Shown here: positions 383-6,397 of the stretch, piece after piece
Layout of the letters: each line of letters starts with the position of its first letter
Numbering within the stretch: position 1 is the first letter of the stretch
Assembly: GCA_020536535.1 (NCBI GenBank)
Contig: JAHLWZ010000809.1
Location: 1 to 64,000 of the forward strand
DNA length: 64,000 nt
Source of the DNA: Pelomyxa schiedti
Taxonomy: Eukaryota; Protista; Evosea
Reading direction: 5' to 3'
The notes under the pieces: model-generated
Seen by the model: only the letters and a program-made list of their open reading frames with translations
Databases searched by the model: none
What the model was told of the DNA's origin: nothing
Position numbers and translations under genes: made by a program

Positions 383-3300
383 TCATGTTTTCATGTGGGC
401 CAAGTTATGGAACAGGAAGTTGACCTGGTGGAAATATTGTTGGTAATTAACCGTAATAGTGTGGAGGTACAGAACCTGTGTCCTTTTGGTGTTTAAACTC
501 TCGGCAATTAGTTCCTTGAAAAATGCTGATGCCTCTTCATCAGTTTTATCCAAGGCAAAAGCGTTGTGAAGGTATACAATGTCTTTTTCCGAATGTAGTT
601 GCGGAATCCCTGTTCCTATCATCTGAAGGAAATGAAACCGCGAGTTAGTGTGAAAGGTAATTAATGGTAGCGAACCAGCTTAAAGAGAGATATGAAGAGA
701 TTTGCGTATCGCCTTATAATGTTGAAAGCATTACAACACGTTTCAGTGAAAAGTTCGAACATCTGAGTATCTGTTCCTCCCATCACATGTGCAAACTCTG
801 GAGAACTTGTGACTTCCCTTGATTTCTAAAATAAAACAAAACCTGATGTAAAGACAAATGGAGCACGCTCTCGGTCAACAGGGCCAAATTTCATCACATT
901 TCCAAGAAACTGGGAAAAGTCTTGCCGTTGTTAATGAAATTTGAGAGAGTTGAGATTCTACCTATGTGAAACAAGTGTCCAGTTTTGTCAATCACTTGAT
1001 AAAGTCAGCAAACGAGAAAGGAATGAGTACACACTTATATTGTCATTATGCCGGTCTCCTATGCCAGTTACATAAGTTGCAACACAATATGCGGCACATG
1101 AAAGTGTGAAGTTTTCAATTGCCTCATCATATTCTTCCTCTTATTATCCACCATTAAGAGTTGTTATTCAAGGCCCGGGAAGTCCATACTGTTGGGATTG
1201 TTTTTTTCTATCCAGTTCAAAAGAGATGTCTTTAGAAGAGCCCCACCGACTCCCGCAGCATCCTTGTGAGGTGTGGATAACTTTCGGGTATTTGTGTTAA
1301 TCTATTTACCTTTTGGATAGAAGCCACTGTAGAACTGTCTGGAACGACTTGAATCATTCCAGAATTGACATCAGTTGCAACCACCTTGTAAACAGACATT
1401 CTCAAGTCTAATCCATGCTCTTGCCATATCTAAACAGTCTCAAAACGTGGATCGAGAGCTAAACAGGATTATACCCTATCCATTATTTCGAATATCTTTC
1501 AGGGAATTAGAGCTAGAAGTTAGAACTCAAGATTTCGGTTACCTGCAAGGAGAGAATGTCCTGCCTTAAATCATCACCTAATTTGAAGTGTCTTAAGGGA
1601 TCTAGGCAAAGTATAATGAAGACCTGTTTTAAAAATGACAACAAGATTTTCTGCGAGAGGAACCGAGTTTTCAAAGACCAACCAAAGTGGTGCTGTGAAC
1701 GAGTCCATAATTTTACATTTTCCAGTAATGGTACTCCGCACCAGAACTCTAGCGATCGTTATTGCTATGTACCACTTCGCAGGGAAGTACGTTGGATTTA
1801 TTGGTAGACACAAAGGCGCGGTACTGCTATTGGCGTCATCAAAAAGCGTACTTAACCCAGCACAAAGAGCTGCCTTGATTCGTTCTTTGGGAGCAACCTG
1901 TGCTGGTGAATTGACAACTGCTGGACCGCCTATTGGTGTAACTCCTGCTGAGGGAATTGAAGAACTGGCTGACACAGCGCCACTAGGTTGTGCACTTGCT
2001 TGGGTAATTGCACCTTGATGTACACATGCAACAGACTTGGCTGTGTTTGAAAGAGACTTCATGAGATTGCACTGGTAGACAATATTAATAGCCAATGGAC
2101 CACAACCTAGTGGGTTTTTGTTGAAATACAACGGAGTACAACAATATTATACTCCAAAAGTACGCTTCTGTAACCATCCCCAAACGCACACGGTATTCGG
2201 GTCTGTTGACTTCGGCCTTCAAATCAATAGTTGATCATTGAGGGTGACTTGCTCAGTGTTTACCTGCAAATTCCAGAATAAACTATGGCCAATAATGGAA
2301 GGATTTTGTATTGCTCGCAAGAGCAGAAATTCTACAAGAGTCGAGTGGTGGTATGTCTCGGTTTTAATTGCCTTCATAAGTTATAAATCATTTAAAGACC
2401 TAGGGGGTACCTGAACAAGTTGCAACAAGTATATCAGTAGTTGTTGGTCTGTGAATTTTGCGATGCACTTCACTGCTTCGTTGTAAGGTAGAAGGAAAAG
2501 TTTTCATACAACCTGCATAATCCCGAATCTTTGCAGCCGGATATGATGCAGCATCAAATAACTGCGGGAAACGTTAATTGATTTATTTACCTAGTAATGT
2601 TACAATGAGTGCTTCTGATGGATCAATGAGCGGCCAGTGCTCCAAAATTCTTCAAAGAAAATATATAAAGAACTGGAAGAAATGAGGTGACACACTTGAA
2701 GAGTTGAGTTGCAGATGTAATGTCAAGGAAGAGCGCACACAATAGAAGTTTTGGTAATATGTCCGGACGGTAAAGCAGCAACCAATAGCGGTGGGACCAT
2801 AGCAGACCAAGCTCAGTTGGGGTGGGTGTGAAGAGAGCGTCTTGTTTGAGAATTAAATGGAGTATGAAAGGGGATTGAAACCCTTCTTCGAAAGTGAAGC
2901 TATAGCCAGGTTATCTTCTTCAGGTGGGTTCTCCACTTCATCCGGAGGGGGTAATTCCAGCGGAACTTTTTTGTTTTAAAAATTTAGAATAATGAGTGAA
3001 GTATAAAGAACAATACTACCATCAGGCAAACAATGAAATAATGGAATTGGAGGAGACTCAAGTTCAAAATTGATAACAATGCATTTGGGATTAAGATTTT
3101 CTGAAGTGGTGCCTTTACAACATGAATGAGGTAAGACAGAATTGGGGAAGTCCTACTCAAAGGCTTTACTGTGGTATTCCACATATGCAAGCGATGTGTA
3201 CCTCCTTTGAACACCCCATCATAGTCAAATAAACTGAAACACACCCCAGCAAGAGGTTTTACTTTTCTTCCAGACAACCCCCGTTGTCCGTACAAGTTGA

Positions 3301-6300
3301 ATAGAAGCCTGGATTCCTACTGTTGTTCAGATTATTTTGGAACACATACACATACACGAGGAAGTTGGTTAAATAAGATTTTACTATGGAGTAGCTCATT
3401 CCACGTAGTTGTTGGCTTGTTCTGTGTGACCATGGGCATATTGTTTATCTTGTGTTTCCCATAGATCCTGTACTAGATAAATCACAGGATTAATCCCATC
3501 CCACCCAGAGAAGTACAATTTGACAGAAACATAGAGGAAAACCTCAGAATCTTCTAGGCTTTTAGTTTTTTCAAAGGACTGCTTGAGTACATCGTACATC
3601 AGATCTTTTTCAATCAATTCTGGGCAGAGCATCTTTTTTTGCCTTAATCCTTCAATGAGGAAGGGGAGGGAATTACACTGAACAAAAGACCTTCAATGGA
3701 TAAAAGTTTTACTTTAAACTCGAGCTCGACTTTCGAAGATGGTAGACACACACAGTCAGCAAATTCCACTTGATAGTTGCTTGGTGCTGTGGGAATAGGA
3801 AAAATAGTGCGGTCATCACTTTCATTCAGTGAGTGAATGAGAAAAAGTATGGGGGCATGGACACACATGTGATATTGGTCAATTGACAAATTGACAGGTT
3901 TCCTTCTCGATACTCGGTGACGCACATATTCCACAGAAGATAATTCCAGGTTAGTGTGCAAAATTTGTTCTCTTGACCCGTGAATCTATAACTGTTACAC
4001 AAGAGTCTAATGTCAATGATGAAAACCTTAACAACACATGACTCTGGGGCAATGGATGTGGAATTCAATGAATTGCACTCAGAAACGGCTTGAGTGATTA
4101 AATCACATATCTTCGTTGATCCTTGTGGCTTAGTTAGATAGAGGACAGGGGGGAAAAAAAAGGCTTGCCAGGGCATTTTATTTGTATGGGAGGGCTATTC
4201 ATCTGAACAAAGTAGCAGTGTATAGTGAAAGATTCAAATCTTTTGTGTTTGTTTCCAGAATATTGTGTTTGGGTTGCCATAGTAACGCCACTATCGTTCC
4301 GTGAGAGGACAGAAGAATTTGAAGTGATTCCACTAGAACAAGGGGTTAAAGCTGCACATGACAGAAAATACGCACTTTATAATTGACTTCTGAAAAAATC
4401 TATATTCGTGGTCTTCAAGGGGGAAATGGAAAAGAGGGGGGAGTTGTGGCTTGAAAAAAGGTGGGAAAAAGTCTAAGTTACTGAAACTTACCTCAAAAGA
4501 ATTCGTTTTTACAGGAAGTGAAACAGAAATGGTTGGGATAGCATCCCAAGTATTAGGGGTATCACGCAGGAATTTGTCTGATGCTGTAGTGAAGTTAAAG
4601 CAGTGAAACTGGAGCAAAATATAACCTATTACTGGTCGGGGAACTATCTTTTTTTACCAGCGAGTGCACATAGTTTAAGTTAGGTATGGTAATTAATGTA
4701 AGAAGTGAACTCACAGGCGGTCTTGGTGTGCTTGAGAAATGAGTTCGGTCAGTGTAAATGCATGTCATTTTGGCAAAAAACTGTTCTTGGAGGGCAAGGA
4801 ACTGCAAAATCTTTTTCAGGCTCAAGAGAAACAAAAAAAAAAATACCTGCCGCAGTTCATCTTGAAGTTGGGTAGTAAAAAACTTTGCTGCAACTTCTGT
4901 TTCATTCACAACACTAGCAGACAACTCTTCAGTTTTTGCTTTTTGTGTCTCATACTTTATTGATGCCTTACCAAGAAATTACACGATATTTCACTTAGAG
5001 ACTAGTAACCTGATTCTGCCTTTCTATGTCAAATGGGCTTGATCCAATCATGAGTGCATTTAGTGCCTCATGATAGCGGTCCATATCTACAATTGCATCA
5101 TCGCAGTCTTTAAACTTGGCCTAGGGACATGTGAGGTTCTTATGTGGGAGAGGCAATTTCTACCTTGATTGAGTTGAGTCTGTTGAAGAAGAAAAAGAAA
5201 GGGTTAAGATATCGTTACGTTACAAAGAGAATAACCTCAGTAGGAAATTCTGTAATAAGTGAAAAAAGGGTGTACTTTCAATCTGCGGATCATTATATAC
5301 TGAAGACAGTAAAAAATCATACATACAACATATTTTTGGATCTCCAATTGAAGAGCATTTATTTGAGCATTGAGATTAGTGATTAGCTCATTGGATTCTC
5401 CGGCAACTTTGATAATATCGTTTCTCAGCATTAGCAGGGGTTCTGTAGAACAATAAGTTGAGAGTTACCTTAATAGTTGGAGAAAAAATCAAGGGATACA
5501 CTAAACCTAAGAAAATATTTTCAATATCGGATTGAGGAGGCCCGGTAGAATTATTTGTATGTAAGGCTTTAGCTCCGATAGAAGATACAGTTGATACAAT
5601 TTTTGATGTGGGTGCTGAAGTGGAGGTTGTTTGGGGATCAGAAACTGGCCTGGAATAAAAAGGGTAAGTGTGTTTGAAGAAAAAGTAGAAGAGTATGACC
5701 ATACTCAGAATTGGTAGAAGTTGGTGATAACGATGGTGATAGTGACGGTGAGGATGTCGGCGATGCAGATGCGGATGCGGATGCGGATGTGCGAGGCGGG
5801 GGAGGAGGAGTCCTTGTGGGAGGTGGAGGTGGTGGAGTGTGTGGAAGAGATGGAGGAGTCGATCTCTTAGCCTGTGAGGAGGCGGGAGGTTGTGGAGGAG
5901 GTCTTCTGGGAGGACCTGGAATATTAAGAGGAGCGGGGGAGGAATGATGACGAGGTGGGGCACTATTCTCCACAGCTGGAAAGCCAGTGGAAGTACAAGT
6001 GCCATTCGAACTTGATTCTGCCGTTAAAGCAGAATCCACAGAGGAGGTCATGACATTTGGCAGTGCAGTGTGCTCCCCAGTGCTTCCTCCTGGTAATGGC
6101 TTCGCAGAACCCGTGGCAGATAGTGGTGGCAGAATGGCCTGTTGCCGGCTAAATGAAACAATCAGTGCCTCGGAAGCGCGTATCATTTCCGCGCATTCGT
6201 GCTTGCTGCACTCGAGCCTCGCGTCCACAGTGTGGAAAGTGGATGCTCCGAGTTTTTGTTTGACCTTTGTTGTGTTGTTTTGTTGTTATTGGCTCAGGTG

Positions 6301-6397
6301 TTCAAACCAAACACAACCAAATTATTGATAAAATGCACTAAGGCATATGGGGGCTCATTTGCACCTTGAAATGACCTTGTTTGAGGGCATGAAACAT
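383..6397 (-). CDS. Class I-like phosphatidylinositol 3-kinase with N-terminal BAR-like domain (BAR - Ras-binding - C2 - helical PIK - kinase), multi-exon
   Basis: Kinase motifs after manual splicing: [44 protein letters not shown]...RERAPFVFT and C-terminal [21 protein letters not shown]-like [36 protein letters not shown]; C2 [27 protein letters not shown]; helical [21 protein letters not shown]-terminus [11 protein letters not shown]|[18 protein letters not shown] joins in frame through GT-AG introns plus one GC-AG intron. Start at 6397 is inferred. Confidence 0.85.

Follow-up and report, generated by a model that had tools for sequence, protein, structure and literature searches.

Pelomyxa schiedti, a free-living anaerobic archamoeba, encodes what the evidence supports as a class I type phosphoinositide 3-kinase (PI3K) of the amoebozoan kind. 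The gene lies on the minus strand of contig JAHLWZ010000809.1 (assembly GCA_020536535.1), within the first 64 kb of that record, a stretch of 64,000 nucleotides (nt) that we call the window and in which positions are numbered as in the record itself. The contig is 129,067 nt long, and an open frame of 805 residues in the window shares 98% identity with the hypothetical protein Pelo_11110 of P. schiedti. A well-resolved gene model for the kinase core, with introns of about 44 nt, is the solid outcome of this work. The core is preceded by a run of helical and proline-rich exons, and here we lean slightly towards a fusion, in which the exons from ATG 6397 onward would belong to the PI3K transcript and provide the enzyme with a long N-terminal extension. 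How class I PI3Ks of Amoebozoa are recruited to membranes is an open question, which bears on phagocytosis, macropinocytosis and chemotaxis. If a targeting module, and especially one that senses curvature, were built into the N-terminus of the kinase, this would offer a simple answer to that question and reveal a new domain architecture.

The gene model was obtained by enumerating every frame-keeping GT-AG or GC-AG junction between 64 peptide anchors, and by scoring splice sites and coding character with a model that had learned from the part of the gene supported by homology, the PI3K core. This approach replaced two others: splicing along the longest open frames, which chose wrong exons, and a self-trained model, which collapsed to tiny exons. 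The core runs from ATG 4280 to the stop codon at 385-383 and encodes 914 residues in 27 exons. Nearly all of its junctions between 4280 and 383 have one solution only, and the GenBank annotation and our model agree on the end of the gene at 383. The core is composed of the following regions.

3867..4280, minus strand: region resembling a Ras-binding domain (RBD), three exons (4280-4169, 4121-4027 and 3985-3867) with unique junctions and a possible start codon of its own at ATG 4280
3020..3818, minus strand: PI3K C2 domain, five exons, with PF00792 on exon 3158-3316
2153..2965, minus strand: helical (PIK) domain, seven exons, with PF00613 on exon 2264-2371
383..2106, minus strand: kinase domain, preceded by a low-complexity insert, 12 exons including the very small exon 1495-1475, stop codon at 385-383, with PF00454 on exon 1310-1429

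The 26 introns of the core measure 37-54 nt (mean 44.3, standard deviation 4.6). Its donors and acceptors are hardly informative apart from the GT and the AG themselves, and intron length is therefore the main constraint in the modelling of this gene. Introns that appear to be longer conceal very small exons. Inside an apparent intron of 113 nt sits a 21-nt exon (1495-1475) encoding IFEIMDR, which presumably occupies the place of what we take to be IIRIMEN in p110alpha. The intron 4168-4122 (GCAAGC...CACAAG, 47 nt) is of the GC-AG type and provides the only in-frame join for the first two RBD exons. In the P. schiedti genome, which has 7.4 introns per gene, GC-AG introns make up 1.6% of the total and GT-AG introns 98.4% (PMC8887013).

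When exons were searched one at a time, the Pfam matches came out colinear, in the order RBD, C2, PIK and kinase.

Exon 3869-3985, minus strand: PI3K_rbd (PF00794), E=0.037, 14.7 bits (cut-off 22), covering profile positions 71-104 of 106
Exon 3158-3316, minus strand, 53 residues: PI3K_C2 (PF00792), E=8.6e-6, 26.2 bits (cut-off 26.4)
Exon 2264-2371, minus strand, 36 residues: PI3Ka (PF00613), E=2.9e-8, 33.8 bits, above the 31-bit cut-off
Exon 1310-1429, minus strand: PI3_PI4_kinase (PF00454), E=5.6e-5, 23.6 bits (cut-off 27.1)

A first-pass annotation of this DNA, made by reading the letters and their open frames, had proposed these same four domains. Three of them, C2, helical and kinase, stand well and are also the ones recorded for the GenBank product (PI3K_C2, PI3Ka and PI3_PI4_kinase). 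The fourth came through weakly. PI3K_rbd is the sole family matching its exon, and the domains recorded for the GenBank product do not include it; the match is weak, yet it involves the right end of the profile and lies at the right place in the protein. A Ras-binding domain in this PI3K is thus a weakly supported prediction, and the case for activation of the kinase by Ras, which hangs on this one match at E=0.037, is weak.

The last large exon gave p110alpha as its best match in the Protein Data Bank (PDB; 1e-5, about 29 bits over 54 residues), followed in order by the beta isoform, PI3K-C2alpha (about 1e-4), gamma and delta. The RBD and C2 stretches returned nothing from the PDB at E<=1 when searched as single exons with phmmer, which shows that such searches are insensitive. 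The catalytic motifs are intact in the translation, namely IFKTGDDLRQD in the context of the catalytic lysine, GDRHNDN in the catalytic loop, and HIDF; judged by their conservation, the encoded kinase is probably catalytically intact. The last exon adds 14 residues, and there the protein ends, directly behind the kinase domain and with no PX/C2 tail. At the other end, neither PI3K_p85B, for the adaptor-binding domain, nor any other Pfam family was matched by any N-terminal exon. We assign the core to the class I type because its domains are colinear, because it has an RBD-like exon and lacks the PX/C2 tail of class II, and because p110alpha is its best PDB match. In this respect the first-pass annotation, which had read it as a class I-like PI3K, is supported.

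This organisation has close parallels among Amoebozoa. The class I PI3Ks of Entamoeba and Dictyostelium lack an adaptor-binding domain and p85-type regulatory subunits (PMC6563779). The class I enzymes of Entamoeba histolytica and PI3K1 and PI3K2 of Dictyostelium likewise follow the order RBD-C2-helical-kinase, and neither an adaptor-binding domain nor a PX/C2 tail is present in them (PMC6563779). The likeness extends to mammalian p110alpha and p110gamma, whose catalytic lysine, DRH loop and DF motif are conserved in the Pelomyxa enzyme. Unlike mammalian p110, however, the Pelomyxa protein has no adaptor-binding domain, it has fewer basic residues in its activation loop, so that its lipid substrate is uncertain, and its helical and kinase domains are separated by an insert. 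This insert is encoded by exon 2106-1773 and is of low complexity, rich in Ala, Ser, Pro and Gly; to our knowledge, mammalian p110 enzymes have no insert at that place. The class III enzymes of the Vps34 type consist of C2, helical and kinase domains only, whereas an RBD-like exon is present in Pelomyxa. The class II enzyme PI3K-C2alpha bears a long extension at its N-terminus that serves in targeting, and its mammalian form works with the BAR protein SNX9 (PMC6563779). Unlike it, the Pelomyxa enzyme has no C-terminal PX and C2 domains.

Upstream of the core, exons can be read from ATG 6397 at 6397-6365, 6264-5705, 5649-5507, 5442-5327, 5120-5010, 4966-4847, 4801-4715 (or 4801-4658) and 4608-4492. 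They fall into the following segments.

6365..6397, minus strand: candidate first exon of 11 residues, beginning at ATG 6397, or else exon 6397-6376 followed by one of 23 nt at 6337-6315
6085..6264, minus strand: helical segment ending RQQAIL, whose coding score is 19.0 in the used frame, the highest among the N-terminal exons, and 5.7 and 11.7 in the two others
5530..6084, minus strand: Pro/Ser/Thr-rich insert of 182 residues, interrupted by one intron of 55 nt (5704-5650)
5010..5442, minus strand: helical exons 5442-5327 (ending EIQKYV) and 5120-5010 (AKFKDC..ERQNQ), with possible small exons 5282-5224 and 5179-5164 between them
4658..4966, minus strand: helical exons 4966-4847 (ASIKYE..DELRQ) and 4801-4715 or 4801-4658 (19 residues more), separated by an intron of 45 nt
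4281..4657, minus strand: linker of uncertain status, with candidate exons 4608-4492, 4449-4376 and 4332-4281 and possible stop codons at 4597-4595, 4380-4378 and 4335-4333

The peptides from which the first-pass annotation had assembled this region were all recovered on the minus strand where it had placed them (an 11-mer at 6397-6365, VKQKLGAST from 6264, EPLLMLRND and LQDELRQ). The beginning of the reading frame can be modelled in two ways, with a first intron of 100 nt or with two introns of 38 and 50 nt around the 23-nt exon, and their scores (2.0 and -2.7) do not distinguish them. The frame of ATG 6397 remains open upstream to 6685. Further on, EIQKYV can be joined to AKFKDC either through a single intron of 206 nt (score 13.6), far beyond the range of 37-54 nt seen in the core, or through the two small exons (score 11.9), which gives introns of 44, 44 and 43 nt and adds 25 residues. 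The two scores are much alike. Used alone, the 16-nt exon (5179-5164; TQLNQ in phase 0) breaks the frame and was rejected. The in-frame coding scores of the helical exons are clear (16.4 for 5120-5010 and 15.0 for 4966-4847).

The insert is equally clear in its coding character, with a score of 14.3 in the used frame against -2.9 and -22.6 in the others. The first-pass annotation had put it at about 190 residues, close to the 182 that we measured. It is composed of 23% P, 21% S and 13% T and holds 11 PxxP motifs, including two of the form [RK]xxPxxP and three of the form PxxPx[RK]. These motifs fit binding by SH3 domains, the role of an SH3 dock that the first-pass annotation had proposed for the insert. 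Metagenome contigs, scanned for the helical exons and also for a stretch from the kinase side, yielded no relatives. As far as its sequence tells, the N-terminal extension is probably lineage-specific, without detectable relatives.

Does this extension belong to the kinase? An in-frame GT-AG path using introns of typical length only connects the two. Exon 4608-4492, which ends at the strong donor GTAAGT, is followed by an intron of 42 nt, exon 4449-4376, an intron of 43 nt and the frame from 4332 onward, which contains ATG 4280 and the RBD. The full fused model would have 38 exons and encode 1429 residues, the first 515 of them ahead of the RBD exon, which begins at residue 516. A stretch of 106 codons across 4653-4336 is open (p~0.02 relative to dinucleotide shuffles), as are the 32 codons that precede ATG 4280 in its frame. 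A start at ATG 4280 leaves about 17 residues before the first strand of the RBD, and a class I PI3K with nothing ahead of this domain would be unusual. GenBank also has a single gene here (7573..383, with a product of 1637 residues), and the annotation of this genome was informed by transcripts, Augustus predictions having been improved by PASA/EVM with transcriptome data (PMC8887013). Its coding sequence is 4914 nt long, of which the core takes 2745 nt and all that precedes ATG 6397 no more than 1176 nt, so that the annotators' model must draw at least some 330 codons from 6397-4281. Taken together, these observations incline us, with modest confidence, to the view that the 5' exons from ATG 6397 are part of the PI3K transcript.

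Several other observations weigh against this view. They suggest instead two tandem genes, a helical and proline-rich protein of about 470 residues (from ATG 6397 to the stop codon at 4597-4595) followed by a compact PI3K of 914 residues from ATG 4280, in which case the appearance of a fusion would be owed to the compactness of the genome, with its open frames and its many weak splice sites. The coding scores of the linker exons are near zero, and readings that end at a stop codon score alike, the best of them, through donor 4714 (...TPRPPVSS...), reaching 59.0 where the fusion path reaches 55.0. Shuffled linkers also allow some path that keeps the frame and uses introns of 37-54 nt, in 44% of cases for 4491-4281 and in 15% for 4714-4281, and the splice sites of this gene are little informative. 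The intergenic stretches on both sides, 6398-6581 (61 codons) and 163-382 (73 codons), are free of stop codons throughout in one frame; this weakens the argument from open frames and makes the merging of genes by read-through easy. ATG 4280 lies in a good start context, with A at -3 and G at +4, and context does not discriminate between it and ATG 6397. The gap of 314 nt that would separate the two genes (4594-4281) is ordinary for this contig, where annotated tandem genes lie 120-510 nt apart and where we estimate the gaps flanking the PI3K gene at 184 and 220 nt. Moreover, exon 2 (186 residues, 5707-6264), compared by HMMER with 1.84 billion representative proteins, had 0 matches at E<=0.001, the GenBank product itself not being among them, although a sister database holds other proteins of this contig. 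Exon 2 may be absent from the GenBank model in the frame that we used, or the GenBank product may lie outside the searched library. Finally, the GenBank gene model over-merges at this very locus, while other genes of the contig are split by the annotation, which is therefore weak evidence on gene boundaries. Two genes fit the sequence equally well, if in our judgement they are the less probable arrangement. The claim of the first-pass annotation that one reading frame runs from 6397 to 383 fares accordingly: an in-frame path exists and a single gene is annotated, but the join to the RBD exon, which that annotation had not spelled out, is unproven, since shuffled sequences yield such a path in 15-44% of cases and stop-terminated readings score as well.

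The over-merging concerns a unit further upstream.

6582..7573, minus strand: unit encoding a multi-pass membrane protein, with a separate ATG at 7573 and a separate stop codon, merged by GenBank into the gene for the 1637-residue product

Were GenBank right, a single protein of 1637 residues would start at 7573 with membrane-spanning segments, continue with the helical part and end with the PI3K. The annotated span of 7573..383 and the existence of an in-frame route from 7573 to 6397 speak for such a protein. Yet, this route requires an intron of 159 nt, when 26 of the 26 introns of the PI3K core measure only 37-54 nt, and it crosses 68 codons without coding character. The membrane-protein unit also has a natural stop codon, at 6581-6579 according to the open-frame table or at 6760-6758 along the best-scoring splice path. 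We consider this model very improbable. The inclusion of the unit, for which no Pfam family was matched, looks like a gene-merging artefact, so that the public annotation of the PI3K locus would merge at least one neighbouring gene, and since the GenBank model takes in this unit it is unreliable evidence for the fusion of the helical exons to the kinase.

If, as we are inclined to think, the helical exons do belong to the kinase, one may ask what they encode. The first-pass annotation had answered that they form an N-BAR domain of the amphiphysin/endophilin type, making the enzyme a curvature-sensing PI3K. In favour of this idea, the helical part without the insert has about 250 residues, the size of a BAR domain, and it contains few helix breakers; it is spread over 7-9 exons that lie in different frames. 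Three short motifs also resemble those of BAR proteins and follow one another as they should. The motif QKLG..T.D..LE, close to the N-terminus, resembles what we take to be the corresponding segment of amphiphysin and endophilin, the FFHLLQNF region resembles the presumed signature of BAR helix 2 (PL..F ... K.R.KLLDYD), and LQDELRQF resembles what we take to be LQEELPSLW. The spacing from IK to VD would presumably equal that of amphiphysin if both small exons were used. We regard these resemblances as leads, not as tests.

The searches give the idea no support. Exon by exon (37-103 residues each), no BAR-type Pfam family and no BAR chain of the PDB was found at E<=10, while PI3K exons of equal size, which serve here as a control, were recognised by Pfam. 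Exons 4966-4847 and 4801-4658 matched nothing in Pfam or the PDB. The BAR family is more divergent, and this negative result at the level of exons therefore lowers the claim and does not exclude it. Nor is any BAR match, even a faint one, on record for the GenBank product of 1637 residues, in which it is not certain that all helical exons are in frame. The hydrophobic moment of the N-terminus is low (over both start models, the best 18-mer in the first 40 residues reaches 0.27-0.31 on the Eisenberg scale), and the helical core of 196 residues has a net charge of -8. Such weak amphipathicity and acidic charge are low for a membrane-inserting N-BAR, although without a structure they are not decisive. 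In short, the Pelomyxa segment is similar to the N-BAR domains of amphiphysin, Rvs167 and endophilin (PF03114) in size and helical character, but it differs from them in the lack of a statistical match, in the 182-residue insert that breaks the first helix region, in its weak N-terminal amphipathicity, in its acidic charge and in the absence of a following SH3 domain.

The different parts of this proposal must be judged separately. A true BAR fold in the helical part seems possible to us, falling somewhat short of probable. That an N-BAR domain is fused to the kinase and makes it a curvature-sensing PI3K, which requires in addition the fusion that is itself unproven, is unlikely. Slightly more doubtful still is the fullest version, in which a BAR-fold module with an SH3-docking insert of 180 residues would be covalently joined to the class I PI3K of an archamoeba, where it would take the place of the adaptor-binding region. 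Curvature sensing is speculation, possible only if the BAR fold holds. A BAR-PI3K fusion did not turn up in the literature that we searched. If it were true, a single polypeptide would respond to membrane curvature, to Ras-GTP and to SH3 partners, and would produce phosphatidylinositol trisphosphate, for example at phagocytic or macropinocytic cups.

A role for the extension can also be imagined in more general terms. It would span about 515 residues, with a short helix, the disordered Pro/Ser/Thr-rich stretch of 182 residues, some 200 residues of long helices and a linker, and might be a module within the enzyme that serves in its targeting and regulation, in place of the adaptor-binding domain and the p85 system. 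Through protein contacts it could place the kinase at the cortex or at membranes, its SH3-type proline motifs would recruit SH3 proteins, the RBD would couple the kinase to a GTPase of the Ras family, and the kinase would then make 3-phosphoinositides. The sequence shows the PI3K domains, their intact catalytic motifs, the exons and introns of the core and an in-frame splice path; use of this path, folding of the helices into a single module and any role at membranes or in curvature are what we infer. The long low-complexity N-terminal extensions of Dictyostelium PI3K1 and PI3K2 direct their cortical localisation, and by analogy they may be the closest functional counterpart of the extension proposed here. 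The helical and proline-rich extension of Pelomyxa differs in that it has no detectable relative, and it is a candidate part of the protein.

The surroundings of the gene provide some minor observations. No Rfam families and no tRNAs were found in the 64-kb window. Elsewhere on the contig the annotation appears to split single genes: at record positions 55287-57246 and 62527-64832, two Sugar_tr pieces lie 90 nt apart, and ABC2_membrane and ABC_tran pieces are separated by a gap of 55 nt. A RhoGAP gene and its neighbour have 1 nt between them. Upstream of the membrane-protein unit, also on the minus strand, 7814-9157 holds an open frame of 447 residues, annotated as a product of 373 residues with no Pfam family, which is very rich in Gln and Pro and contains Met-Gly repeats.

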